NCBI GenBank assembly: GCA_001643675.2
Contig: LSRY02000040.1
Location: forward strand, 248,001-312,000
Source: Monocercomonoides exilis PA203
Taxonomy: Eukaryota > Protista > Preaxostyla
Direction of reading: 5' to 3'
Length of the DNA: 64,000 bases
Below the pieces are notes generated by a model. That model was not told the origin of the DNA. It saw only the letters and a list, made by a program, of their open reading frames with translations, and ran no database searches. The translations under genes and the position numbers were made by a program. Positions 7,199 to 56,134 of this stretch are shown one piece after another. The number at the start of each line of letters is the position of its first letter. Position 1 is the stretch's first letter.

Positions 7199-7270
7199 CG
7201 TCCACTCCGGGAATTGAACCCGGGCCATGAGAGTGACAGTCTCATATTCTACCGACTATACTAAGCGGAC
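7199..7270 (-). tRNA. trnD-GUC: tRNA-Asp (anticodon GUC)
   Basis: GTCCGCTTAGTATAGTCGGTAGAATATGAGACTGTCACTCTCATGGCCCGGGTTCAATTCCCGGAGTGGACG. Acceptor stem GTCCGCT/AGTGGAC, anticodon arm TGAGA-CTGTCAC-TCTCA, T-arm CCGGG-TTCAATT-CCCGG, discriminator G, T-runs downstream. Confidence 0.95.
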
Positions 7271-7279
7271 TTGCATATA

Positions 7280-8926
7280 GTCGGGGAGGAAACCCGGGCC
7301 AGGGAGGAAACTCGGGCCTCACCCATAGTTTGATATTTGTGATCTCTAATGAAAAAAACAATTAATTCTGCATCAAGACTTTGCGCAACTGCTGAAATTC
7401 GTGAGTTAAAAGATGCACACTTGAAGGCAATTTACTTACACAACATCCTGAACATTCCAACGAGAGAAATTGCCCGAAGCCAGGTACTTTCTCGCTCTTC
7501 AGTGCAAAGAGCTCTCGCCGCAGAAAAAAAAAGGAATACACCTGGAAAATCTGGAAGACCAACTCTATTTGACAATTCGGACGAACAGTATTTAACAACA
7601 GTGATAATTCATGATGCAGAGCATGGAACGTTTCATTCAAAAATGGAAATTACACAAATGGTTTGTATTTCGCTAATTATTATTTGTTTTATTTTTTTTT
7701 ATAATTCAGGCTAATGATTTGCTAAAAACAAAGAGAAAAGAAGGAGATGAAGTCAAAACGGTTGACAAACATTGGGTGAAGCGATTTTTGAAAAGGCATA
7801 TTGAAATTAGTCTTGCGAAACCAATTGCTTTGCCTTTAGGGAGAGCAGCCCACACTTCGAAATATTCAATCGTCCCCTTCTTTGACGAAGTGAAGAAATT
7901 GTTTGAAAGTGTCAATCCAATTCCACAGCTATTGTTAAACTTAGATGAAACTTCCACTTTTTCATCCAAACAACAACCTGAACTTGTTGCTTCTTCATCC
8001 TCAACGCCTTCTGCAGTTGTTCCTGAAGTTCACTTGCCAACTTCGACTTCAATAATCTTCATGACAAGTGCAGACGGGTGTCGATATTTGACACCCATAT
8101 TAATTCCATTTTCAACGCTTCCAGAAGAATACAAGCTAGGAACAACTTCGCACGAAGTGTTCATTCCTTCTTTATCTGATCATGTGACATCAGCAATTTT
8201 TTTGGACATGTTCAAAAAGTGCGTAATCACAGAAATTAGAAACAAAAGAATTGTAGTGGGAAAGAGAGAAAAGCATGCCGTCCTCATTATGGACGGTGGA
8301 GTGGGACATTTTCAGCCAGAAATTCTTCAATTATGCAAGGATAATTTAATTGATCTTGTAAAACTTCCATCACATACTTCACACATTTTGCAGCCTAATG
8401 ATCAATACATCTTCGCAAGTATGAAAAGGGTGATCGGAAAAGCCAAAAAAAGCGGAACAACAACCTCAGCATCATCAAAGAGAGAAATATTTATTGAAAT
8501 CCTAAGAAATGGACTTGCAGCCGCTTCGTATCCAGAAACTATAAAATCTTCTTGGAAAAGCACAGGGTTATGGCCATTTAACCCAGAGAAGATTTTATCA
8601 AATCTTCCTGATAATCCTCCAGAATGGGCATTACCTGGCGTTGAACCCAAATCTGCACCAATGGGATCTTCATTTGGAGCTGTTTATTATTCTTCTGATG
8701 ATTTATCTGATTTGTTCTGAAGACATTTTATTTTTTATTCCATATCATTGCAGCTTTTTTGGAATGCACAGCTTTTTCATTATAGTTAAATATCTTTATC
8801 TTTACTGTTTTTCTTTGTTTCAGTTCATGAAATGAAATACAAACACAAAAAAAGGAAAAATAAAAAAATTCCCATTTTAATATCTATGGCCCGGGTTTCC
8901 TCCCCGGCCCGGGTTTAGTCCCCCAC
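7280..8926 (+). mobile_element. pogo-like (IS630-Tc1-mariner superfamily) DNA transposon E1, apparently intact and autonomous
   Basis: ~40-bp TIRs (GTCGGGGAGGAAACCCGGGCCAGGGAGGAAACTCGGGCC / GGCCCGGGTTTCCTCCCCGGCCCGGGTTTAGTCCCCCAC), TA on both flanks, enclosing an intact transposase. Confidence 0.93.
7349..8720 (+). CDS. DDE_1 (pogo/CENP-B-like) transposase, DD35D, 440 aa, one 49-nt intron
   Basis: Exon 1 7349-7660, intron 7661-7709 (GT..AG), exon 2 7710-8720 in frame. HTH region (GRPTLF; WVKRFLKRH); catalytic motifs LNLDET, MDGGVGH and LPSHTSHILQPND with 35 residues between D2 and D3; STGLWPFNP. Confidence 0.92.
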
Positions 8927-8930
8927 TATA

Positions 8931-10585
8931 GTTGAGGAGTTAACCCGCTCAGGGGAGTTAACCCGCTCAGATGATCAAAAATCAACCCATTCTTTGTTTG
9001 GGAAAAAATGTCAAAGATTGAGAAAGAGATCCACAGAATTGCAGCATCCAGCGAAGCAAGGCTACTGGAAACTCCTCACGAGAAAGGTCTTCACTTGCAT
9101 CTTGTTTGCGGATTCAAAAAGGCTGAAATTGAACAAGCAAATATTGTTTCCAGACATTTTCTAAAAAGAGCAGAAAAAGCTCAGAAGGAGAATCGCGTTG
9201 TTGGAAAACCCGGGAGACCTTTTCTTTTTTCAAAAACAGACGAACAAAGGTCAATTGTCAGATTGGAAGTCGATGCAGATAAAGGAATTTTCCATTCAAT
9301 GAGAGATATAGCGGAAATGGTTTGTAAGCATTCGAATTATTGTATTTTTAATTTTTTATTATTTGCAGGCAAATGAAATTAGAAGAGGAAAAAGTACTGA
9401 TGAAGAAGAAGTCAAATCTGTAGACTAACACTGGCCAAAGAGATTTATTGAAAGATATCCAAAACTTGCTTTGAAAAAAGCAACAAAGTTACCAATAGGC
9501 CGTGCTGCACATAATTCGAAGCAAACTATAGGTCCCTTTTTTGATAAAATTGCAAAGTTCTTTTCCGAAGTGAAAATTGCACCTCAATTGTTGTTCAATT
9601 TGGATGAAACATCAACTGTATTTTCAAAATCTTCAGAAGATGTCGTGGTTCCGTCTTCTTCTTCAGTTCAGCCAATCATTCCAGAGCCTTCATTGCCAAA
9701 TTCAACATGTATAGTTTTTCTCACAAGCGCAGATGGAGTGAGATATTTAACTCCAATTCTTATTCCATATTCGACAATTCCAAAAGAATATGTTGAAGCT
9801 ACAACAGAAAATGAGGTGTTCATACAATGTTCAACTGGACACATGACAACTGCATGCTTTCTGGATGTATTTCAAAAAGCAATCCTTCCGAGCATAAACA
9901 AAAAGCGAATTGCCATAGGACTACAACGCAATCACGCGGCTTTGGTGATGGATGGAGGAACAGGGCATTTTTCCACAGAGATCGTTAAATTATGCAAAGA
10001 TAATTTAATCGATCTTATCCAACTCCCCTCGCACACCTCTCACTTGCTACAACCCAATGATCAGTACATTTTTGCCAACATGAAAAAATGTTTCAAAAAG
10101 TCAACTGAATGTGGGAAAACAAACACGGCTAGCGAAAGAAGAAAAGAATTTATTTCTGTTTTAAAGGAAGCAATTGCAATGGCTTCGTTTCCATCTACAA
10201 TAAAAGCCAGCTGGAGAGTGACAGGCCTTCATCCATTAAATCCAGATGCTGTTCTTGCTCAACTGCCAGAGAAGCCTCCAGAATGGGCAGAAATTGCTTC
10301 ATCATCGAACAGGGCACCGGAAGGAGCAATGTCTGGGAAAATTTTGCTCAGTTCTGATGATTTGTCTGATATTGGAATATGATAGAGTTTTTCTTTTTTT
10401 TTATCCTCTGTTTATAATTTTTCAACCTTTTTTAGATTTTTTCCACAAATATTCTGCTATAATGTTACAACTAACGATTTTAGTTTGTTTTCGAAGAGAA
10501 AAATGAAAACTGCTGAAGGAAAAATGTTTTAACTTCTGTGATCATCTGAGCGGGTTAACTCCCCTGAGCGGGTTAACTCCTCGAC
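8931..10585 (+). mobile_element. pogo-like DNA transposon E2 (different subfamily), directly abutting E1
   Basis: ~47-bp near-perfect TIRs GT(T/C)GAGGAGTTAACCCGCTCAGGGGAGTTAACCCGCTCAGATGATCA; TA on both flanks. Confidence 0.93.
9008..10382 (+). pseudogene. DD35D pogo-like transposase with a single premature stop
   Basis: Exon 1 9008-9319, 49-nt intron 9320-9368, then exon 2. In-frame TAA at 9426-9428 (VD*HW, versus VDKHW in E1 and E4). FNLDET, MDGGTGH and LQPND are intact. Confidence 0.88.
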
Positions 10586-11494
10586 TACAAGACAGACGTT
10601 AAAATAATTGAACGGGTCAATTCGAATTGATTAAGTCAAAACTTTTTTTTGTTTATTGAAACGGTATTGACTCTGTCAATTCTGTTATATATATATTTTT
10701 GATCACTGTTTTTCTTTTTTTATTATGGAAACATTTTGATCCGATTTTTTAACATGTTTCATGAAACTTAATGTTTAGAACAAATTGAATGAAAAACGTA
10801 ACTGTGTGTGTTTTGTTATTAATTATTTTTTTGATTGTGCATGGTTTTTTTTTTCGATCAAACAATATTATTATGATCCTAATAGTTGGGGAAAAAACCA
10901 ACTTCAGGGAAAAAACCTGTGCACAAGGGTTTAAACAATATTTTTTGGAAAATATATATTTGAAATTTGGTTTATATGTGAAAAAGAAATGTGTATTGAG
11001 GTGATTTTTATTGTTTTCAAAAAAATATTTTCAATAATTGCGAAATTGATCAGTTGTTTAGGCACCTTTTGATAACACATTTTTGAGTATATTTAAAATT
11101 GTATATTCGCAATGCTTTTTAATAATTTTTAAAATCAAAGTGTATTCTCAAGTTTTAAAAAGAAAAATATTTAATGTTCGATTTTTTTTTGAAGTGAAAA
11201 AAAGAGAATATTTTTGTGAAATGTGTGATTAATATTGTCGCAGTCCCTTGAAAACTTAGCAATTGTTACCAACGAAAATAAAAAAATAAGAAATTTTCAG
11301 GAAAAAATAAATGAATGTGAAAATTAAAAAAATCTTTATGATCCTGGATGAAAGCCACAAATAGAAGCAAAAAATGAGTTTGAAAATGTGGAAAACAACA
11401 AATACAAACAATTTTATTCAAGCGGAAACGAAAGTTTTCAGATATCCTATTAAAATGAAATTCATATCCATGAACATAATTAAATATATATTTT

Positions 11495-13900
11495 ATGGTT
11501 CCGAATCCCATTATTATAATCAATATATGTTCAAAACTTTGTAATTCGAAATTTCGAATGCAAAATGCGATGTATGCATTCAGGGAATTTCCTTTTTCTG
11601 GAAGTGTATTATGCGTAAATGCAACATTAGAAATATCGTTTCTTTCCTGCATTTTTGAAAACTGTTTTTCAAATATTTATTTTGCAGAACAATGTTTGAA
11701 AATGTGCTAATAAATTGCTTAGACTTTTATTCCTGTTATTTCCAACGCTATTTAAGTTAACAAAAAAATGCCATTTGTTCAGAAAATGAAAGAAAAGCAT
11801 TCTGTCGTCAAAAACTTTCAGTTCTCTCTTTCTCTCTTCATGCAAATGACCGAAGGCAAATAAATGAGTGGACAATGCAAGAGATGTGAATACTCAAAGA
11901 AGCAAAACAAATAACATAAGCTTATATTAATAACAGAGCAGAAGAATTCACAAACTAAAAAAGTGAAGAAGGACAGATGGCATTGCAGAAAAACAAAATT
12001 ACAAGAAAGGGGTCCACATACAAGTTCTTGAGAAGAATGAGGCAACAAATGGTTTAAATAATTGTGCTGTGTTTAAATAGTGATAAAATTACTTCAACAT
12101 TTCTGTTTGAACGTTTTCAAGCTTCTGAATCAACAAGGACAGAACAAGTAGAAGGATCTTAAGTTGCAACAGTTAAAACAGTTCCCTCTTGATTATTTAA
12201 CTTATTCAACGAGAAAAATATGGATAAGTTGGATTTGACAAGAAAAATGTTTCTTCACTCATATTTTTGGATAATTAGAGCCGAACTGTTTTATCATCAA
12301 TGAATCCACTGGCGAATGAAGAATGAAAGATACTATGTGAGGAACTCACTTGAAAAATGCTTTTATCAGAAAGTCAATGAAGGACAAAAGTTTGAGGGAA
12401 AAGTGCTGCAGAAGACTTGTTTCGATATGATATGGAGCAATGGTTGTGAAAGAAGAATATCTAATATTTCAGCAAAAGAAATCCAAAAAAGAAATCTTAG
12501 AAGCTTCAAAGCATTAAATCCGAGATTCTATCAACAGCAAAAGAAACCGGAAGCGAAGACTCAAGATTCTTTAGACATGATAGCGTGTTTGAAGGAGATG
12601 AAAGCAAGGAAGGGATCGGATAACAAGTGATGATAGTTAAAAGGGGAGAGTGTTCAACAATGAGATCATTAGTGAATGTTTTTCAATTTAATAAAAATTG
12701 CTTTATTGAGCGAAGCGAAAATACAGGAAAGAAACTGTCAACATCTGTCAAATGGAAGGACTGCGTGACGAAAGGAATGATATGCATAATTTGATCAAGA
12801 AATTCAAGTATTTTGAAGAATACAAATCCAACATATGAAAGTGATGAGACATATATGGTACAATCGATTATTACAGACAAATGTGGGGAGACGTTAGTGA
12901 ATTGAAGTAATCTCTGTGGGAAAACAACTGTTTTAGGGATATGGCGGTGTTCAACACGTTTCAGCGAGATCCGGCGAGAGTGAAAAAGTTGAAGGATCAG
13001 TAATGAACGAAGGATTTAGATAAAGAGACCGCAACAGGATGATAAACCAAATGAATCCTGGAAGCTCGGTGAGAATAGTGAAATAAGTGAAAGCGTTATT
13101 TGAAAACTGAAAATCTTTTTTAGCAGCGAAGGAAGAGGAGGATTCAAAGGGGAAGCAGATAAGCTTCCAGACGATTATGTGAAGGTTTTCTAATTTGGAA
13201 ACGTGAGTTTTGAGGGATGCGACGAAAGAAGAAATGTTCCAAATGAATAATAAATAAGTGGAAAAATGACCTAGGTGATCAACTACAAAACTTAACAGTT
13301 AAAAGCCATCACTTGATGAACTGAGTGAGATTGTCGGAAATGAAGGAAGTGCAGCGATATAATGGAGCAATGTTAAAACAAACTTTCGGGGTGGGATGAT
13401 ATGAAACAATGGGCAAACAATAAAAATTGGATCATATAAAGTTGAAAAGTCATTGACTTGAAAGATGGAGAATAAATATATGAAGACTATGCAAGATGGA
13501 GATAGAATTGAATAATGAATAATAACCTCAGCGGAAAACCTGGATTTTGTTTTCAATCGAACAAATGACGAATATTTATTCAAATGAAATGAGGATTGCC
13601 TTGTTCCTTCAAACAATTGCTCGACAATAGAGGAAGAAACAGAGAATGACACATTTTCAGAGACAAAAGTGGAGTCGTTGAAAAAGAGAAGAAATTTGCT
13701 TTCATGGAAGAAGTTTCAATTGAAAAGAGGAAGCGATCATGATGATGAATATTAACCACCAAGTTCGTTATCGTTCAAAGAAACGGAGAAAAACGAAACA
13801 CATGAAAAAATTCCAAAAGACGATTCTCATTCAGGGCCATGATTGTTTTCACATTTATAGCAGATGACACTAACGGTATTTTTTCTTACAGAAAAATGGA
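11495..13900 (+). pseudogene. Heavily decayed cargo ORF(s) of unknown function inside E3
   Basis: Purine-rich coding-like plus strand with ORF fragments (e.g. 12316-12630) broken by many stops. Confidence 0.3.
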
Positions 13901-14753
13901 ATTCAAAATTGAACTTTTGTGTTTAAATGAATCAAATCTGCCAGATGTTTCTATCGAAGCCTTACAGAATCCTGACGATCAAGTGAAAAAATAGATAACA
14001 ATATTCTTGAAAAACAAGTAACTTTAAGACATTTTGATTAATTTGTGGCTTAAAAAAACAATTTCTTCGAGTGGAATAAGTGCATTAATCAATCAATTTG
14101 GCCTTGTTATTTCAGGATCAAGGGAAATGGAGCAAAGAACAATTGAGTCTTTTGTGTTGAATAATTGTTTGTCCCAATTATTGGAACAATTTTTCCAGAC
14201 ATCAGAATAATGAGCTATCATCACTTTCATCAGAAAAACTGTATTCAAAGTCTTCATTTTTTTTCTTAATTTCTTCAACAGATCGTATGGAATAAACCTT
14301 CTCATTTTCACTTGACTGATCAACGGATTCTGTGTTTGTCGGTTCGTTAATTTCGTTGTACTCACTATCACTGTAATGTCTTTTCTTCCATCTTCTTATT
14401 TTCTTTATTCTTCTTTTTTTATTTTTTTTATTTTTTTGCTTTTGATATTTAGTGTTATTATCCGAACTGCTGGAATCTTCTTCATTAAAGAGTATTTCAT
14501 CTTTCTTCTTTGCTTCTTCTTCATTCGTGCAGTCATCCGCATCTTTTTCATTTTAGAATAACGGAATGGTGATTACATAATCCTCACCATCTTGTGAATC
14601 TGTTTCTTCGTCCTCACTGTCAGATTACGTGGAATCACCAATTTCTGTTGTTCAATCAATATTTCCTTTATGAGAAAAATGAGAGGTCTGTTTTATTTCT
14701 TCAATTTTTGTTTCATTCTTTTTCTATGTAACTTTTTTATTTTGTTTTGCCAT

Positions 14754-16700
14754 CTAATTTCTTCCAGTTGTTCTGCAAAAAGACTCGTTCAAAAGCTTTT
14801 TCTCCTCATATAGCTTCCATTCCTCCAAAACATTCGGGGAAGTTACACATTTTCCAGAAATGGACCACCTGTTTGTCTTTTTTATTTGTTTCATGTTTGT
14901 TGGAAGTTCCTTTATTGTTTTTGATAGGACATTATCAATATTTGATGACGTTATTCCAGCCTCAAAAAATCCATGACGGATCACCCGAGGAGCTGGGGCA
15001 GGATAAGAACAATCAGCAATAGATTTTACAAATGAAAAAAAGTCTGTTTGAATTTTTTTTATTGATGGTTCTTTGCACACATGCTTTAATTCTTTTTTTA
15101 AAACTCCATTAGGCCCAAGATCCAAAGGCTGAAGAATATGTGAAGCATGTGAAGGAAGAATAACAACATCGACACCTACTTCTGATAGCTTCTCCCAAAG
15201 TTGTCTATTTCGCCGAGATGAATGCCCGTCTAGAATGAGAAGAGCTGGGAGTCTTGAATCTTTTGAAATCGTAGTATGTTGATTTTTTTGATAATCACTC
15301 TTCAATATTTCATTTTCTTCATCTATATTTTCTTCCATAAACTGACGATCATCACACATATTGATGTTTTTTATAACGAAGCCACCAGTCGTTCAGATCT
15401 TCTTTAATTGCTAATTTCGACAAACTAAGGGATTCTGTTAAAGTGTTCTCACGCTGAGTTACTTCAATGAAATTCATTTTGGTGAAAATGAATCCATTTT
15501 CATCAAATTGCTTTTATTTGTATTCACACTCCTCCTCTTCTCTATTAACTTGATATCACATGCTTTCAATATTATTAAAATTTGATAATAATGAGGCTGA
15601 TTGAAGAGATGAGGATGATGATGATGAGAAAGGAGATGAGGATGATGATGATGAGAAAGGAGATGAGGATGATGATGATGAGAAAGGAGATGAGGATGAT
15701 GATGATGAGTGTGGAGGTTGATTAGAAGTATTATTTGATGCAGTTAATAATAATGAATCGAAATTTTTCGCGTCAAGTTTTTTATTTTTTATTGAACTCG
15801 TGATATTTTAGTTGCATGTAATGTCGGTTATATTTGAATTTCTTTTTGGTTTAATATGTTTAAAAGGAGTTGTTGAAGTCGAAGATTGATGTGTATTAAG
15901 ATGATTATTTATTTTTTCAATTATTCTTTGTTGTGTTGTGATGTATTCCATTTCATTGTTCAGTATAATTTCTTCAAACAATTCTGCTGTCATCCATCCT
16001 TTTGTTGTTGAATGAAGAATAAAATTATCATCGTACCATTGCTGTTTAATTTCATTTTCATATTTTGTAGAAAGGATGAGATGAGTTGGAAGATGCCCTC
16101 CGTCGGCAGTGACGATGAATAAAAGCGTCAAATGCCTAAGTGGAGGGACTTCAAGCACTGGGAGAAATGCACACATTTTCGATACAATTTTTTTCTGTTT
16201 TGTTTTTTCGTCCGTTTGGCAACTTGTTTCGTCAAGTTGCAAAATAAGTTTAGGATGATATTTTTTAGTAAACATTAATCGTCGAAGATTTGTCAAAAAC
16301 TTTTTCATATTCGTTTCCGTTGAAGCCCTTAATCGGGCAATATCCAAATTTGTTTGGTTTATTGTTTTCAGTTGTTTGTGTCGATTGACGAAATTTCTTG
16401 CCCACTTCACACTCGGCATTTCAACAAACTCAACTGTTTCTGATTTCCTTTTCATTCTTATTCTATAAGCCTTGATATTTATTTATTATAAAAAAATAAA
16501 TTAAACAAATAATTTCAAACCAATAAAGGAAATGTTTGGAATGTTGGTTGAGTCGTAATGTCGCTCCAATTAACTATCATTAAAACAAGCTCTTCTTCTT
16601 CTTCTTCAGTTAGATAAAAAGGTCTTCCGTTTTTTCTTTTTTCCAATCCACGCTTTGTCATTTTTTTTGCCCTTAAGTTTTTGAAGCAATCCTTTCTATT
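14754..16700 (-). pseudogene. pogo-like DDE_1 transposase of E3, disrupted, with a long Ser/Asn-rich insertion in the catalytic domain
   Basis: 15808-16455 encodes WARNFVNRH, LQLDET, TADGG and KGWMT. 14754-15359 encodes ALLILDGHSSR and LPSHASHILQPLD. The intervening low-complexity segment contains stops. Confidence 0.85.
15606..15709. repeat. 27-bp tandem repeat, ~3.8 copies (encodes SSSSSSSPF on the minus strand)
   Basis: Unit GAGATGAGGATGATGATGATGAGAAAG repeated. Confidence 0.9.
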
Positions 16701-17116
16701 CTTGTATTTTGCAGAATTCGTTTTCGATTCTAATTTGTCCTTAAAAGATCGGAAAAAAATTCCACAAGGGGATGCAATTGCTTTTTAAGATAAATGTTAT
16801 GGTTCAGAAAACCATAAATTATATTTTTTTTGAAAAAAACTGAAAATATACTAAATAAAGTTCAAATCGAGCAGAAAAAAATGAATATTAGTAATGTGAA
16901 GAATTTTCTCATTATTATGAGACCATGTGCACAAGTTTCGTATTTTGTGCGGGTTTTTTCCCTAACTATAAATTTCTTGTATAAAATGTATTTCAAACCA
17001 TATCTTGAAGCGATCTGCATTGCAAGTGAGATTCGGACGGTCAGAAGTTTCATCACAAAGATGAAGCGATGGTTTATTTTGCGTCCCGATTTCCTTTTCA
17101 CTTTTTTTTTTTTTTT

Positions 17117-18244: not shown

Positions 18245-19288
18245 TCAATTTTTCATTTTTGATAAGTATCTCTCGTTTGTAATCTTTCTGGCTTCAATTT
18301 TTCTCATGTGACTTGCATAAAGCTCCTCCAAAAACAATGAATTTGTTTCTGCATCTTTCTTTGTGAGTGGATTGTGCAAGATATAAAAGTCTGTGAGGCA
18401 GCAAGCCACTGAAAAATAGACTGCAACACACTCCATTTTATAAATCCATGAATGATGGAAGATAATGAAGAGTGTTTTGAGTCTTCCGAAAAATCTTTCC
18501 ACGATAACGCGATGTGTGGCCAATTCTGGAGTTCCAACTGGCTTTGTGATGATGGCTTCAAGCTCTGGTTTTGCTCCAATGAAAGCAGAATCAGCTAAAA
18601 TCTTTGTTCCTCCCAGCCTGTGCTCGAATGTCGTGTAGTGCTCGTTGAAAATAGTGAAATCATTTGTCAAACCAGTGAAGATGGAGCTGATTGTGCTTGC
18701 TGTCCCCACCTTGTGGTTCACTCCCACCTCCACTTTGACGTTGCAGATGTGGCATATTCCTGTGTAATATTTTTTACAATATTCCAGCTTTCCTCCGGGT
18801 CTGTTTGTCGGAATGACAGAACAATCAACAACAATTCTCACATCTTTCGACTCCTCCAAAACTTCAGGATAAAATATCAAAAACAAATCTGCCAATGGAG
18901 CTCTGAAATGAGAAACAATACTGTGAAGAAGTCGGACAATAGCGTTTTGAGTTTCATAGAAAGGTGATGATAATATGAGTGTGAGTGTTGTTGAACCGTG
19001 ATGAAGAAAAGTGAGCAGCAAGAATAATTGTTCATCAAAATTGTTGATTTCTTTCAGTTTCACTTTACGATGAGGAACTTCCATTTGAAGAATGTGTGTG
19101 AAAAAAACAAATTCTTCTTTTGAGAATCCAGTGATTCGAAAAAAAGAAGAAACAGGATCATCAAAATAATCACAAGCTTTTTTGATGATGGAAAATTTTT
19201 CAACTTTTTGAATTGATTCATTCCGTTGTGGAATAATATTTCTCCTCTCCACACTCTTCAAAACGTCCAAAAAATTTTAATGTGACAT
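18245..19288 (-). pseudogene. IS5/PIF-Harbinger-like (DDE_Tnp_4) transposase, near-intact
   Basis: Motifs RITGFSKEEF, IVVDCSVIP, NVKVEVGVN, TNDFTIF, KILADSAF and HRVIVERFFGRLK. The ATG at 19288 is followed by TAA at codon 4 (MSH*NFLDV versus MSQSTFLDI in the 63788 copy). Confidence 0.85.
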
Positions 19289-19487: not shown

Positions 19488-21161
19488 GAGATGGAGGAAA
19501 CCCCAACTGGGGAGGAAATCCGGATCAATGATCAGAACAAAAATTCAGAATATTAGTTAATGATTAATCTCAAAAACAAGATTTTCCAGTTTATTCAATT
19601 CAAAAAATATGGATTAAACATATTGAAAATTATATTGAATAATTAATATCAAAAGTTTTGAAAAATTATCGACAGGAAATGAAAGAAATAATTGAATAAT
19701 CAATTGCGAAACACAAAAGATAGCATTTTGCAAAAAGTGAAGAGTCGGAATCAGAAGCCTTATAAATCGCTCCGAAATTATTTTTTTCAAGTGCTTTTGT
19801 TAGCTCCACAGAATTCTCGGACCAAGATGGTGGATTTTCCTGTAAATGCTTGAGAACAACTGATTTATCTAAGGGCAAGAGCCCAGAAACTTTCCACGAT
19901 GAGATAATTGTGCTGGGATAGCTGGCCGTTGTAAACCCATCTCTAAGTGTTGTTGTGAAAACTTCTCTTTCCTGTGAGGATGTCTTTGTCTGTCCACTTT
20001 CTGTTGCTCTTGCAAACACTCTTTTCATATTGGCGAAAATAAACTGATCATTTGGTTGAGTGATATGTGATGTGTGAGATGGAAGTTTAATTAGTCCATA
20101 AGATTATCTTTACAAAGTCTTCTTATTTCTTTCGTTAAATGTCCAACGCCGCTTTCCTTAATCAACGCTGCATGCTTGTATTTCTCGCCTTAGGCTATCC
20201 TTTTTTTAATAATTTCTGGAAGAAAAAAGATTTGGAACAATTTCAAGAACAACGATGATGTGAAATGTCCAGTTGTCGAAGGGAAGAATACTTCTTGTGA
20301 GGTTGTGGCAAACTTGTACTCATCCGGCAAAGTTTTATAAGGAATGACTATGGGAGTTAAATATCTGCAGCCATCTGCGCTGCACATGAAGACGATTGAA
20401 GTTGCAGTTGGAAGAGATGTTTCCAAAGCTATAACTGAATTCCAGGATGAAGATGAAGCGACTAGATCATTTTTTCTTTTATGAAAAAAGGTTGAGGTTT
20501 CATCGATATTAAATAACAATTGAGGAATCGGTTTTTCCTCGTTAAGATACGATTCGTATAAATCGAAAAAAGGTATTGAAACCTTTCGGCAAGAATGAGC
20601 AACCCTTCCGATTGGAAGAGCTTTTGGCTTTGCAAACACAATTTCTGGATGTCTTTGCAAAAACTGTTCCGTCCAGTGCTTGTCCACTGATTTGCATTCT
20701 TCACCTTCATTCCTTTTCTTTTGCAACATTTCATTTGCCTGTCAATGGAAAAAAATTAAATAAATATAAAAACACATCCATAACAAACCGTTTGAGTTAT
20801 GTATTTTTTTATTGGATATTTACCAATTTTTTTTTCGTCAAGAAACAACTGTTTCATTTCCAACTCCTCAGCCTCGTTAAATAATGTGGGCCTACCACAT
20901 TTCCCAATGCTTCTGCCATTGTCCCTTGCTTTGATCGCTCGCTGCAACGAAGATCTTTTTAACAAGCCGCTTTCATCAATTTGTCTTTCAGAATACTTAA
21001 GAATATCGTGAACGTACAAGTCTTTTTATGTGTGGATCTCAAAGTGATCTAATATCACTTGTTGCGTTGACGTGCGTTAAGGAGGGTTTTGTTTTTAACA
21101 TTTTGATCTGAAACTTTTTTAATATTTTTTAATCAAAAATGGCCCGGATTTCCTCCCCGAC
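19488..21161 (-). mobile_element. Decayed pogo-like transposon E4 (same TIR motif as E1)
   Basis: Right end GGCCCGGATTTCCTCCCCGAC|TA; degenerate left end GGAGGAAACCCCAACTGGGGAGGAAATCCGG. The transposase (~21100-19700) has the same intron (20788-20739) and FNIDET, plus stops, frameshifts and loss of the MDG motif. Confidence 0.85.
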
Positions 21162-22213
21162 TATTAGAAATTGATTGATTTGACTGAGTCGCGAAAATGT
21201 GACTCAGTCAAATCAATTTTTGTCTGGTTTATCGAATTTCACTAATTTTAATTGAATTTCCCTCAATCTCACCAAAAGAGAAATTGCGAATTTTTATGAT
21301 CACAAATTGTGATCGAACATTTTTTTGTTTTGTTTTAAATTTCACTATTTAAAGCTCATTTTCGTTGAACTTATAATTTGGGGCGAAATTTTTTAATTTA
21401 TGAAAAATATCATGTTTTGTTCCAAACTTATTCTGTACACATATCACAATGTGTGAAGCATTATTATTCAAAAAAATATTTGCAACGAAATCCATAATAA
21501 TAATTTATTTTTATATTTGAAAACAAGCGTGATATTTAAAGAAATAACAGAAAAAGACATGTGAAAGGTGTGATCATGATTTTTGCCTTTGTATTCAAAT
21601 GCGTTGAATGTGAATAGAAGTTTCATAGTATTGTCAATGCAACGAGCACTGATTTCAAATGAATAGTAAATATTAACGCATAATTATTGTATCTGCTTTC
21701 GGATAACTTATGCATACAAACGGAAAACTCTATGAGGACATTAAAACAAAGAGATTTACAAATACAAAAAATTTTCAGGAGGATTTTTCAGAAGAAGAAA
21801 TATAATAATCTGTTTGGAAATAATCACCTTTATTCCTTCGTCTTCTTCTTTCTCTTCATCATCTTTAACATTTTCATCATCAAAGCCAACACATCACCCA
21901 ATTCATTCCTCCGCCCTCTCCAACTACAACACTTTAGCCACTATCATCGTCTGCAACTTAGCTTTTGTTTCTTCTCTTCTGGCACACTTCTGCGCCCCTA
22001 TCACTTCTCCTATTTCTTCCTGCCTTCCATCGCTCTCTGAGATATCTGCCTTTGCAGAATGCACTTGTTCTTCACATATTTGTTCAGCACTTCCTGCAAA
22101 TGAATTTGTGGAGTATGTCTCGCTCCGTTTAACAGATGAGAAGAATGGCACGACAATAATATAGCTGCTAATCACACTTGCCCATTCAACACAATGAAAC
22201 ATCCTTGTGCTGT

Positions 22214-53560: not shown

Positions 53561-53599
53561 TCCTCTTGAATGGATTTGATGAGTATTGAACATTTAATA

Positions 53600-56083
53600 G
53601 TTGGGGAAAAAACCCACATCAGGGAAAAAACTCATGCACATGGGCTAAATAAATTCTTCATTAATTATGTTTGTTAAAATTTGAGTTCACTTGAGAAGAA
53701 ACATTGTGCATTGAAGTGATTTTTCTGTTTTTGAAACAAAACATTCTACAAAAGGGAAATTTGATCCAAATTCACTCCGCTTTTCACTAATTCCAAATTA
53801 TCAAGTTTTTTGTCATTCAACTGACTTTTCTTGACTTATTTCATTTATATTCAATGAAAAAAAATGAAAGTTTTTTGTCTGAATATACTTGTTTGAATGG
53901 GAAAAAATATGAAGTGTACAAAGAGCATAAAAAAGTGAGATCTGAAATGAAAAACACATTTAGATTTATGTGATTAAAGTGTTTCGATATTCCTATAAAA
54001 AAAATATATCTGAAACAGAATAAAAATGATTGGTTTTTTAAAAATCCCAAAGATCTTTAATCATAACAATTCAAAGAGATTGAAGGTCAACGATAATAAT
54101 TTGAAAATCATAAATACAAACCATTTATTGATAGAAAAATATCAACGATATGATTTTTCTGTTCAAATACAAAAACATTCATCAATGAGTTTGACACATC
54201 AAAATAATGGGTATGCAACACATCATTTATTTCCAATTGAATTCATAAAAAGAAACTTAAATTTTTTTGTAATTGTGAATGAGATAAATTGTAGATAGTA
54301 TATTTAACAAATGATTCATTAGTTGCATCCTGAACAGGGGAACATACAAGTTTGATTTGTCATTCGTTGTTCAATTCGATACTTAGAATATTATCTGTTC
54401 ATTTTGAAAAAATTATTTGCTTTCAGAGAAAACGAAAGAAATTAAAGATATAAAGAGAGAATTTTAAATTTTTGATCCTTCCATCTATTTAGTTCTTCGG
54501 AAAGACGAGAATAACATCAAATGGCAGAGCTTGTTGTGATTTATAAACGTTTTTGGGAGATCTATCCAACGTGTTGATATATCCATATTTTTGTTCATTT
54601 TGTCTGTGAGAAAGCAGTCACTGAGTATTTGAAAGTGCTCTTTTATGAATTTTTCAGCTGGAAAACAAAGAAGCAAGGGAAATGGAGCTCAAAATCATTT
54701 TTTCAAAGAAAGGTTTATGGAGAAAGGTTTCCTCGAAAACGGAGATCATAATACAAATAGGGCTGTTTCTATGCAACTTGGTGCACAAACATGGTACTGT
54801 TGAATACTTGCAACAATTACATCTCAAATTGAAAGCGAAAGATGAAGGAGTTTGATTTTTTTGACGTGAGTTTTGACAACACTACACATTAGAAAATTTT
54901 TAACCATTGTTCAGGAAATGTTGTTTTGAAGAATTAGAATTTCAAATTGATGTTTATTAAAAAGATATGCACTCCAATCCAGACAGCAAGTGTGAATGAA
55001 AGAATTTTAAGAGAAAAAATCAGCAAAATGCAATTTTTTGACTATGTTTTCCCATCAATAATCATCAAAAACATGAAGCAAATGTCAAATTTTGCTGAAA
55101 GTTGAGATGTGAGGAGAAAGAATATACACTGAAGAGATGGAGTGAAAAAATAAAGAAACTGTTTGCATGTGCATTTATTGAACATATTCAGTGAGGAGGA
55201 AAGACTAGAATTAAAAACCACTTCACAAAAAGGAACTTCTGTGGTGAACTGAAAGAGGATAAATTGGGAGCGATTGCTTTTGATTCGAACATCATTAAAA
55301 ATTCTGTGATCTGCAAAACATAAAAATATGAAATGAATGCTTCATAAAGCGTATATGGTAAGAAACAACTTCAAGTGAGTGCATACGAGCATTTAGATAA
55401 AGTTTTATCATTGGATAAAAGATTGCTTGCATTTGAACAAGAAAATAATGTTTAATGTTTCGTAATTTTTTTTTTATTTTAAAAAAAATTTTTTATACTG
55501 TGAATCTTTATGGAGATAATATTTAAAATATAAATTATTATTTATTTTTAATCGAATACCTTTTAAATATTTCGATAAAACTGTTAAAAATAAAAAATGA
55601 CTATCAACATTTTTATTGATTTATATTCGATGTGAAATCAAAAAATTATATCAAACAGTCATTTCTAATGAATTGAAGATCGTCAAAAAGTGAAATTTTA
55701 TGATTAAAATCAAAAGAAGCAATTATAATTATTAAATTGTATTTCTGGAGCAGAAAAAAGAACTATTCATCAAGAATTCAATTTTTTCAAAAATGAAAAT
55801 AAGATTTCACACAATTTATCTTCTTTGCTTCATTTTTTGACAGAAAGAATTGCACTGTTTCATATGATAATTGAAGGAAAATTGTGATCGTTTATTTAAT
55901 CTTGTTTTGTAAGTTTCAAGGAAATAATTATCAATTCAACAAATGACAACAAAACACAAAAAATATACTTAACGGAATAAGAATTATTCCGTTTTATTGG
56001 TGTTTTGATTATGCTTATGGTAATTTTGAAAATTTGAGACAATGTGTTCAAGTTTCGTATTTTGTGTGGGTTTTTTCCCTGAC
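53600..56083. mobile_element. Non-autonomous relative (E5) of pogo-like E3, 2.5 kb
   Basis: Ends GTTGGGGAAAAAACCCACATCAGGGAAAAAACTCATGCACA and AAGTTTCGTATTTTGTGTGGGTTTTTTCCCTGAC match the E3 left and right ends respectively. TA flanks; no transposase motifs seen. Confidence 0.87.
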
Positions 56084-56134
56084 TATAAAAAAATTTTTAA
56101 TTTGATTATTCAATAATGGTTTTGAACAAAAATT

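Follow-up and report, generated by a model that had tools for sequence, protein, structure and literature searches.

Why do two DNA transposons lie one behind the other at the 5′ side of a tRNA gene that they leave intact? The question is raised by a 64-kb window of the Monocercomonoides exilis PA203 genome (contig LSRY02000040.1; the window is the whole stretch of DNA that was studied), in which E1 and E2, two members of the pogo superfamily, are stacked upstream of tRNA-Asp(GTC), the sole tRNA gene that ARAGORN finds there. The initial annotation of this stretch had proposed that pogo elements target tRNA genes; this holds genome-wide, and for the clade of E1 and E2 only, with 14 adjacent ends against none in a control. 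This clade, made of subfamilies A and B, very probably integrates 2-8 nt upstream of position +1, at a site set by its position at genes that RNA polymerase III (Pol III) transcribes, and the Pol III complex is the most likely agent that positions the transposase.

Genome searches covered 101 contigs and 82,301,135 bases; C1, C2 and so on are contig labels, and L002 to L070 are labels of extracted loci. The Rfam search of the genome scored 63 of 3339 raw tRNA candidates, and the tRNA map was then rebuilt from a pattern that runs from A box to B box, found at 168 sites genome-wide and at 2 in the control. For C1-C26, this strict pattern and eight Rfam hits gave 103 tRNA positions, an incomplete list. 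The analysis included 20 tRNA-centered loci; stack contents beyond 1.5 kb were judged from coordinates alone. As for the genome itself, 35% of its Oxford Nanopore assembly is unclassified repeat and the complete chromosomes are 62.6% coding; the paper that describes this assembly makes no mention of tRNA (PMC8767320).

Pogo Ends at tRNA Genes across the Genome

E1-like terminal inverted repeats (TIRs) occur at about 40 places in the genome, and the flanking sequence shows that five more of these elements end 2-7 nt upstream of a tRNA gene (Thr, Glu, Leu, Val-CAC and Val-AAC). Copies of the E2 family abut tRNA-Val, tRNA-Pro and an intron-bearing tRNA-Ile. A pattern that joined a generic pogo end (GGNTTNNNNCCYYNACTA) to a tRNA A box across 8-18 unspecified bases had 15 matches genome-wide, corresponding to 14 distinct ends, while the reversed pattern, used as control, had 0. 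The adjacent tRNA was confirmed by ARAGORN or Rfam for 11 of the 14 ends, with nine anticodon types; the targets are Asp, Leu, Val-CAC (two), Val-AAC, Glu, Thr (two), Pro, Ile and one on C56. From the 67 ends of the clade, at most 0.03 adjacent ends are expected, and this holds when each of the 3339 raw tRNA candidates is counted as genuine (P = 3e-34).

Regarding the geometry, the TA is invariably 5′ of the tRNA, at 2-8 nt from position +1, and the spacer sequences have no common features. The orientation of the pogo element relative to the tRNA is not fixed, with seven divergent and two tandem cases; the orientation test, run on 6:2 before the C8 copy was added, gave P = 0.29.

One of the 14 ends lies at a multicopy tRNA-like gene with A box, B box and T-run, and two flank a single miniature inverted-repeat transposable element (MITE) on C44, where the tRNA status is only putative. 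The tRNA-like gene is found at L039:2690-2775 (C8:100997-101082), with more copies at C1:479208, C1:757502, C1:2181968, C17:443175 and C17:742239, and pogo is 2-3 nt upstream of one copy; the gene in L039 has no tRNA call by ARAGORN and no credible Rfam match. The C44 element (C44:650681-651373) is a pogo MITE of 0.7 kb; one 24-nt sequence with an A box stands in both of its outer flanks, in inverted orientation, and these flanks could represent a head-to-head pair of tRNA-like genes or else a duplication that is palindromic. Finally, no 5S, U6, 7SL or other Pol III gene was detected when 20 loci whose pogo ends lie away from tRNAs were scanned with Rfam.

The tRNA-Asp Junction and the Elements E1 and E2

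The features of the window that bear on the insertion are the following:

7199-7270 (−): tRNA-Asp(GTC), the target gene, intact, with position +1 at 7270 (ARAGORN)
7271-7279: leader remnant TTGCA (7271-7275), TA (7276-7277) and TA target-site duplication of E1 (7278-7279, tRNA positions −9/−8), read in the sequence
7280-8926 (+): E1, pogo, subfamily A1, with TA flanks at 7278-79 and 8927-28 (sequence and TIRs)
7349-7660 (+): exon 1 of the E1 transposase, 104 codons, N-terminal helix-turn-helix (HTH) region (reading frame and splice signals)
7661-7709 (+): intron of the E1 transposase, GT..AG (splice signals)
7710-8720 (+): exon 2 of the E1 transposase, 336 codons and stop, with the end of the Tc5 HTH, the DDE_1 core and the C-terminal tail (Pfam)
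8931-10585 (+): E2, pogo, subfamily B, oriented as E1, with TA flanks at 8929-30 and 10586-87 (TIRs)
9008-10382 (+): E2 transposase, with exon 1 at 9008-9319, intron at 9320-9368 and exon 2 at 9369-10382 (sequence, list of open reading frames (ORFs) and BLASTP)
10588-10700: terminus of an older, unrelated repeat abutted by E2 (local alignment)

E1 thus starts 9 bp 5′ of the tRNA, as first annotated, with its body at 7280 and the tRNA +1 at 7270. The body of E1 is followed by TA at 8927-28, TA at 8929-30 and the body of E2, so that TATA alone (8927-8930) separates the two elements, again as described at the outset; E2 is closed by TA at 10586-87, and CAAG begins at 10588. The junction between tRNA and E1 is no assembly artifact, because short-read contigs from the 2016 and 2022 runs of the same sample span it with 0 differences.

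As for the site before insertion, the initial annotation had reconstructed it from two insertions at adjacent TAs that spare the tRNA. The tRNA is indeed intact; the sequence beyond E2, instead, is not unique DNA. The stretch 10588-10700 is the terminus of another repeat, whose local alignments scored 110 and 98 where shuffled sequence reached 47 at most, the partners abutting pogo ends at C12:435786 and C11:1020161; therefore, the reconstructed empty site already joined the tRNA to an older transposon. The genome has seven tRNA-Asp genes, with an A-box-to-B-box string identical between the copy in the window and other copies: four keep the native leader (..TTTTCAACAA directly before G), three have a transposon immediately upstream, and none is an uninserted paralogue with the reconstructed upstream site, the kind of copy that the annotation had suggested looking for. 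Among unoccupied tRNA genes (upstream flanks of L051-L066), a common leader, ..TTTT(C)CAACAA or CAAGAA, directly precedes +1, and its last bases survive pogo insertion, as in the TCAACAA that follows the TA before tRNA-Glu on C16.

E1 has a TIR of 43 nt, with arms matching at 88% (7276-7318 and 8888-8930) and two 18-nt subrepeats in each (GGGAGGAAACCCGGGCC); its copies elsewhere in the genome are 91-98% identical. Exons 1 and 2 of its transposase were queried separately, unjoined. Exon 2 matched Pfam DDE_1 (PF03184) with E = 3.7e-10 and 40.1 bits (cut-off 22), and its start matched HTH_Tnp_Tc5 marginally, with E = 8.3e-5 and 22.9 bits (cut-off 22.2); exon 1 alone had an HTH match below threshold, and its 312 nt are likewise intact in the copies on C8, C7 and C56. 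The second and third catalytic Asp correspond to D195 and D231 of exon 2, 35 apart, and this spacing together with DDE_1 makes E1 a DD35D pogo element; the catalytic spacing of pogo elements reportedly has the range DD29-42D, according to Gao et al. 2020. E1 codes for the DDE_1 transposase only, and neither reverse transcriptase nor integrase, which would mark a retroelement, was found in it.

E2 has a TIR of 49 nt (98%; 8929-8977 and 10539-10587), again with two 18-nt subrepeats in each arm (GGAGTTAACCCGCTCAG), and copies elsewhere with 93-96% identity. Its transposase is interrupted by one in-frame TAA (9426-9428); it has a gene structure like that of E1 and 54% identity to the E1 protein over exon 2 (BLASTP), the comparison covering the part 3′ of this stop. 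The two elements had been annotated as different subfamilies, in agreement with their assignment to A1 and B.

By domain content, TA duplication and TIRs, E1 and E2 are typical of the pogo superfamily (pogo, Tigger, Tc5 and Fot1, within the IS630-Tc1-mariner group), with which they share the DDE_1 core with its DDD triad and the Tc5/CENP-B-type HTH; TA was present at 65 of the 65 ends examined. The usual terminus in this superfamily is of the CAGT type; in the E1/E2 clade, GT(C/T/G)(G/A)GGG follows the TA.

Targeting and Nontargeting Subfamilies

Pogo ends that match the same end pattern belong to four subfamilies:

Subfamily A (E1-like): end GGGTTTCC(T/A)CCCCGAC; ~1.65 kb, plus 0.7-kb MITEs; 41 ends, 10 tRNA-adjacent
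Subfamily B (E2-like): end GGGTTAACTCCCCGAC; ~1.65 kb; 26 ends, 4 tRNA-adjacent
Subfamily C: end GGGTTTTGTCCCTGAC; 2.2 kb; 13 ends, 0 tRNA-adjacent
Subfamily D: end GGGTTTTTTCCCTAAC; 2.4-2.8 kb; 16 ends, 0 tRNA-adjacent

Hence, 14 of 67 A/B ends are adjacent to a tRNA versus 0 of 29 C/D ends (Fisher 0.004), and the element counts within 6 kb upstream of a tRNA are 19 of 29 for A/B versus 1 of 13 for C/D (Fisher 5e-4). That targeting is confined to one clade points to a determinant in the A/B transposase. In this protein, the HTH exon has 35-44% identity between subfamilies versus 55-62% for exon 2, with targeting unchanged; exon 2 is open in 11 of 11 copies checked, from five A/B subfamilies. 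A motif of the C-terminal tail is kept across five subfamilies, ..APxG..G.(V/I)(Y/W)..SD...(L/I)(F/G), also written LP..PP.WA...AP.G...G....SD. The D-type transposase has 25% identity to that of E1.

Upstream-Only Distribution and Transposon Stacks

For the 29 A/B elements on C1-C26, the count upstream of the nearest tRNA is 8 at up to 10 nt, 19 at up to 6 kb and 22 at up to 15 kb, and downstream it is 0 at up to 15 kb (sign test, 5e-7). A/B elements not adjacent to a tRNA usually meet, precisely at their TA, the end of a different transposon.

The window contains such a stack, since positions 7271 to at least 21380 are nearly all transposon sequence. Beyond E2 and the repeat terminus that it abuts, the features are as follows:

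10883-16968 (−): pogo, subfamily D, with ends TAGTTGGGGAAAAAACC.. and ..GGGTTTTTTCCCTAACTA, probably interrupted (DDE_1 ORF pieces at 14754-16455)
18245-19270 (−): PIF/Harbinger-type transposase ORF inside the stack (Pfam DDE_Tnp_4, 7.7e-12)
19490-21163 (−): E4, a decayed A-type pogo with at least three stops, the outermost pogo of the stack
21166-21380: end of the TIR family TE3 (85-91% matches to TE3 ends)

E4 has a degenerate left TIR and a right end ..GGATTTCCTCCCCGAC followed by TA, and its nearest genome copy is 89.6% identical. The initial annotation had treated E4 as a counterexample, a copy with the same motif and no tRNA; E4 belongs instead to the same stack, ~12 kb upstream of the same tRNA. 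Decay increases outward from the tRNA: E1 is intact with its nearest copy at 98%, E2 has one stop and 96%, and E4 has at least three stops and ~90%. This gradient fits a model in which each newcomer lands at the tRNA-proximal TA and older copies are pushed outward. A second D-type pogo of the window (53598-56085) lies 46 kb from the tRNA and has decayed completely.

Regarding TE3, its terminus is GAACTTGATTGATTTGACTG(C/A)GTC and its copies are ~977 bp, with mini copies of ~60 bp. It sits ~10 nt upstream of tRNAs, for example tRNA-Gln in L069 and L070, and its end is abutted exactly at TA by six pogo elements of different subfamilies (L033, L017, L002, L015, L029 and L019). The end in the window matches TE3 ends at C5:1258852, C8, C12, C23 and C7 (85-91%). 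A single 977-bp TE3 copy separates the pogo at C24:752825-754483 from a tRNA (C24:754483 to 755461), and the same arrangement is found for the pogo at C5:1256185-1257880 (C5:1257880 to 1258858).

Another recurrent transposon terminus, GGGAATTATTCCCGGGTAT.., lies ~12 nt upstream of tRNA-Lys(CTT) in L063 and L064 and also abuts pogo ends at C12:1387299 and C22:1131587 (L045:940-1000; L048:2700-2760); it is possibly that of a Harbinger family. Moreover, a third, distant pogo lineage (C7:1369378-1370367, minus strand; L003:3440-4450), with 28% identity to E1 exon 2, no stops and a C terminus (..SGRIYLSSD..) similar to the A/B tail, lies between an A and a B element in the stack upstream of the tRNA at C7:1374985. 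Finally, telomere-like TTAGGG runs occur 30-45 nt beyond the distal end of three pogo copies, C8:99308, C38:95350 and C41:743077 (L039:960-1000, L004:1460-1500 and L026:960-1000).

Proposed Positioning of the Transposase

A/B elements integrate at a TA 2-8 nt upstream of the +1 of a tRNA or tRNA-like gene, about the Pol III start, and spare the gene; repeated insertion at the same spot very probably displaces older copies outward and produces a stack. The site is very probably chosen by its position relative to the Pol III gene, not by homology between TIR and tRNA, with the determinant within the A/B transposase. In the mechanism proposed, the latter is most likely positioned by the assembled initiation complex (TFIIIB/TFIIIC/Pol III), as Ty3 integrase is by TFIIIB, either via contact with a subunit or via recognition of DNA distorted by the complex, and the C-terminal tail is a candidate contact. 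Beyond the observed anatomy, position, enrichment, upstream-only asymmetry and subfamily specificity, we infer the tether to the Pol III machinery and the role of the tail. About even chances are given to a broader proposal: a single pogo clade would have acquired, perhaps through the tail, a tether to the Pol III initiation complex like that of Ty3, alongside Harbinger and a third TIR family of this genome that would have done so in parallel. Integration would then fall 2-8 nt upstream of whichever gene carries A and B boxes, and this would be the first case of a natural DNA transposase that a host factor guides to a site where the gene is spared.

Several points weigh against this explanation as a whole. 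The insertion distances are counted from tRNA position +1, a putative proxy for the Pol III start of M. exilis. About one-quarter of the A/B elements on C1-C26 lie more than 15 kb from any tRNA of the list, itself incomplete (C12:435100, C12:436784, C22:1129890, C22:1141361, C7:447613, C1:740033 and C5:1410626), and two D-type elements are found within tRNA stacks (10883-16968 of the window; C25:1076872). As for the tail, its conservation is no higher than the protein average, with 7 of 20 positions invariant. Excision or splice joints were not seen in the assembled short-read contigs of one sample. Finally, three unrelated superfamilies use the same narrow site, which could indicate a cue in DNA structure and not separate tethers.

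In the alternative that survives best, although it is unlikely, there would be no protein partner, and the A/B transposase would read the A box as a ruler or prefer DNA bent or melted by the initiation complex. Indeed, all targets have in common only the A and B boxes and the constant spacing between these and the insertion window (9-15 nt when counted from TA to T8), and unrelated transposon families use the same few bases; however, C/D pogo elements of the same genome do not use the site, and a generic structural preference of pogo transposases is therefore insufficient.

Likeness between the E1 TIR and tRNA-Asp

Positioning by the Pol III complex has a second competitor in the reading of the initial annotation, according to which the HTH of the transposase that binds the TIR would also bind a TIR-like sequence in the tRNA (T or D arm), placing the cut at a nearby TA. 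The likeness on which it is built is real. The E1 TIR and the T arm of tRNA-Asp have in common the 12-mer ATGGCCCGGGTT and match at 16 of 20 positions, a level reached by 0 of 2000 TIR shuffles, and the inverted 9-mer reported for the E1 junction and the D arm is also present (TATAGTCGG at 7276-7284 and CCGACTATA at 7253-7261). In addition, GTCGG, which follows the TA at the terminus, is also how the A box ends in Asp and Glu tRNAs. Both E1 and the 98% relative that it has at C8:1064102 are upstream of tRNA-Asp, which accounts for 7 of ~170 or more tRNA genes; this is a weak hint, with an estimated, uncorrected P of ~0.02.

The long match is, however, limited to tRNA-Asp. tRNA-Pro and tRNA-Glu have only CCCGGGTT in common with the TIR, and the targeted Val, Thr, Leu and Ile tRNAs match the TIRs over 5-7 nt only, which is the background level, as the untargeted Lys, Cys and Gln tRNAs do likewise. 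The targeting subfamilies diverge at exactly the matching bases (GGCCCGGG, GGCTCGGG, GGATCGGG and TGAGCGGG), and the conserved GGGTT core and the terminus TAGT(C/T/G)(G/A)GGG are found in the nontargeting C/D subfamilies, too. The tRNA-like gene, with a different T stem, is also targeted, and changes in the HTH exon track changes in the TIR while the target stays the same. TIR/tRNA likeness is missing in most of the tRNAs that are targeted and in the other subfamilies that target, so that it does not explain targeting, and recognition of a TIR-like site by the HTH is thus a very improbable account.

The B-box consensus, GGTTCGANTCC, includes C56 and A58. The TIR has neither, which speaks against binding to a TIR-like site and rules out mimicry of the B box by the TIR. 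As for the origin of the motif, derivation of the TIR from tRNA had been offered as the other way to read the likeness; the T-arm-like motif is present across the E1 subfamily, including copies away from tRNA-Asp, so that it was not copied locally from the neighboring tRNA.

The remaining alternative, that TA insertion is random and copies survive only in harmless places near tRNAs and old transposons, suits a gene-dense genome (62.6% coding on complete chromosomes, PMC8767320) and transposon-rich stacks that would tolerate insertions, but it is improbable in the extreme, as survival bias alone cannot produce a one-sided 7-nt window that holds 12 or more independent insertions, all on the 5′ side, with 0 of 29 A/B elements within 15 kb downstream, C/D copies persist far from tRNAs, and intergenic DNA is far larger than the insertion windows (P < 1e-33).

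Comparison with Known Elements and Meaning

The closest known behavior is that of Ty3, which inserts a few bases at most from where Pol III starts, at tRNA genes of any isotype and at other Pol III genes, leaves the gene intact and needs promoter-bound TFIIIB/TFIIIC (PMC5911963, PMC7175516). A/B pogo elements resemble it in position class, in target range and in the use of a non-tRNA gene of Pol III type, and their insertions likewise fall within a few bases of many Pol III gene starts. The differences concern the element itself: Ty3 is a long terminal repeat (LTR) retroelement of the Metaviridae from Saccharomyces cerevisiae, with an integrase and a 5-bp duplication, whereas E1 and E2, as DD35D pogo elements, are of the cut-and-paste kind and duplicate TA; moreover, TFIIIB dependence is demonstrated for Ty3 and would apply to A/B pogo by analogy. 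A/B pogo elements act like Ty3 without membership in the Ty3 family.

The Dictyostelium elements TRE5-A/TRE3 and DGLT-A are similar in that a gene-dense protist genome hosts position-specific targeting of tRNA flanks, and ORF1 of TRE5-A binds TFIIIB subunits (PMC5911963). They are retroelements, and TRE5 inserts ~44-54 bp upstream in fixed orientation, whereas A/B pogo elements insert at 2-8 nt in variable orientation.

Dada transposons use sequence recognition and have a 6-7 bp duplication. They are DNA transposons tied to tRNA and snRNA genes, with multicopy genes read as safe sites, and they form their own superfamily, inserting into specific multicopy small-RNA genes (Kojima and Jurka 2013, PMC3706591; PMC8869645). 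Unlike Dada, A/B pogo elements insert upstream of many tRNAs with no common target sequence, with a pogo transposase and TA duplication; insertion inside a small-RNA gene by a Dada-type transposase was not what was found here, as the tRNA is intact, the spacers are varied and the transposase is of the DDE_1 type.

In the reviews consulted, Pol III start-site targeting is described for retroelements only (PMC5911963), and no report was found in the literature searched of tRNA or Pol III start targeting by pogo or Tc1/mariner elements, or by any M. exilis transposon. What this analysis adds is a contrast between subfamilies, a pattern test across the genome and a negative outcome for TIR/tRNA homology.

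In conclusion, Pol III start-site targeting is the textbook case of a mobile element that chooses a harmless landing place, and a pogo transposase of ~440 amino acids with the same habit, if true, would show that it evolved independently in cut-and-paste elements. The presence of targeting A/B and nontargeting C/D subfamilies in one genome is a natural contrast for mapping the determinant, and A/B pogo would offer a compact model of guided DNA transposition. For M. exilis itself, pogo targeting accounts for part of the repeat fraction of the genome and for the kilobase-scale stacks that flank its tRNA genes.

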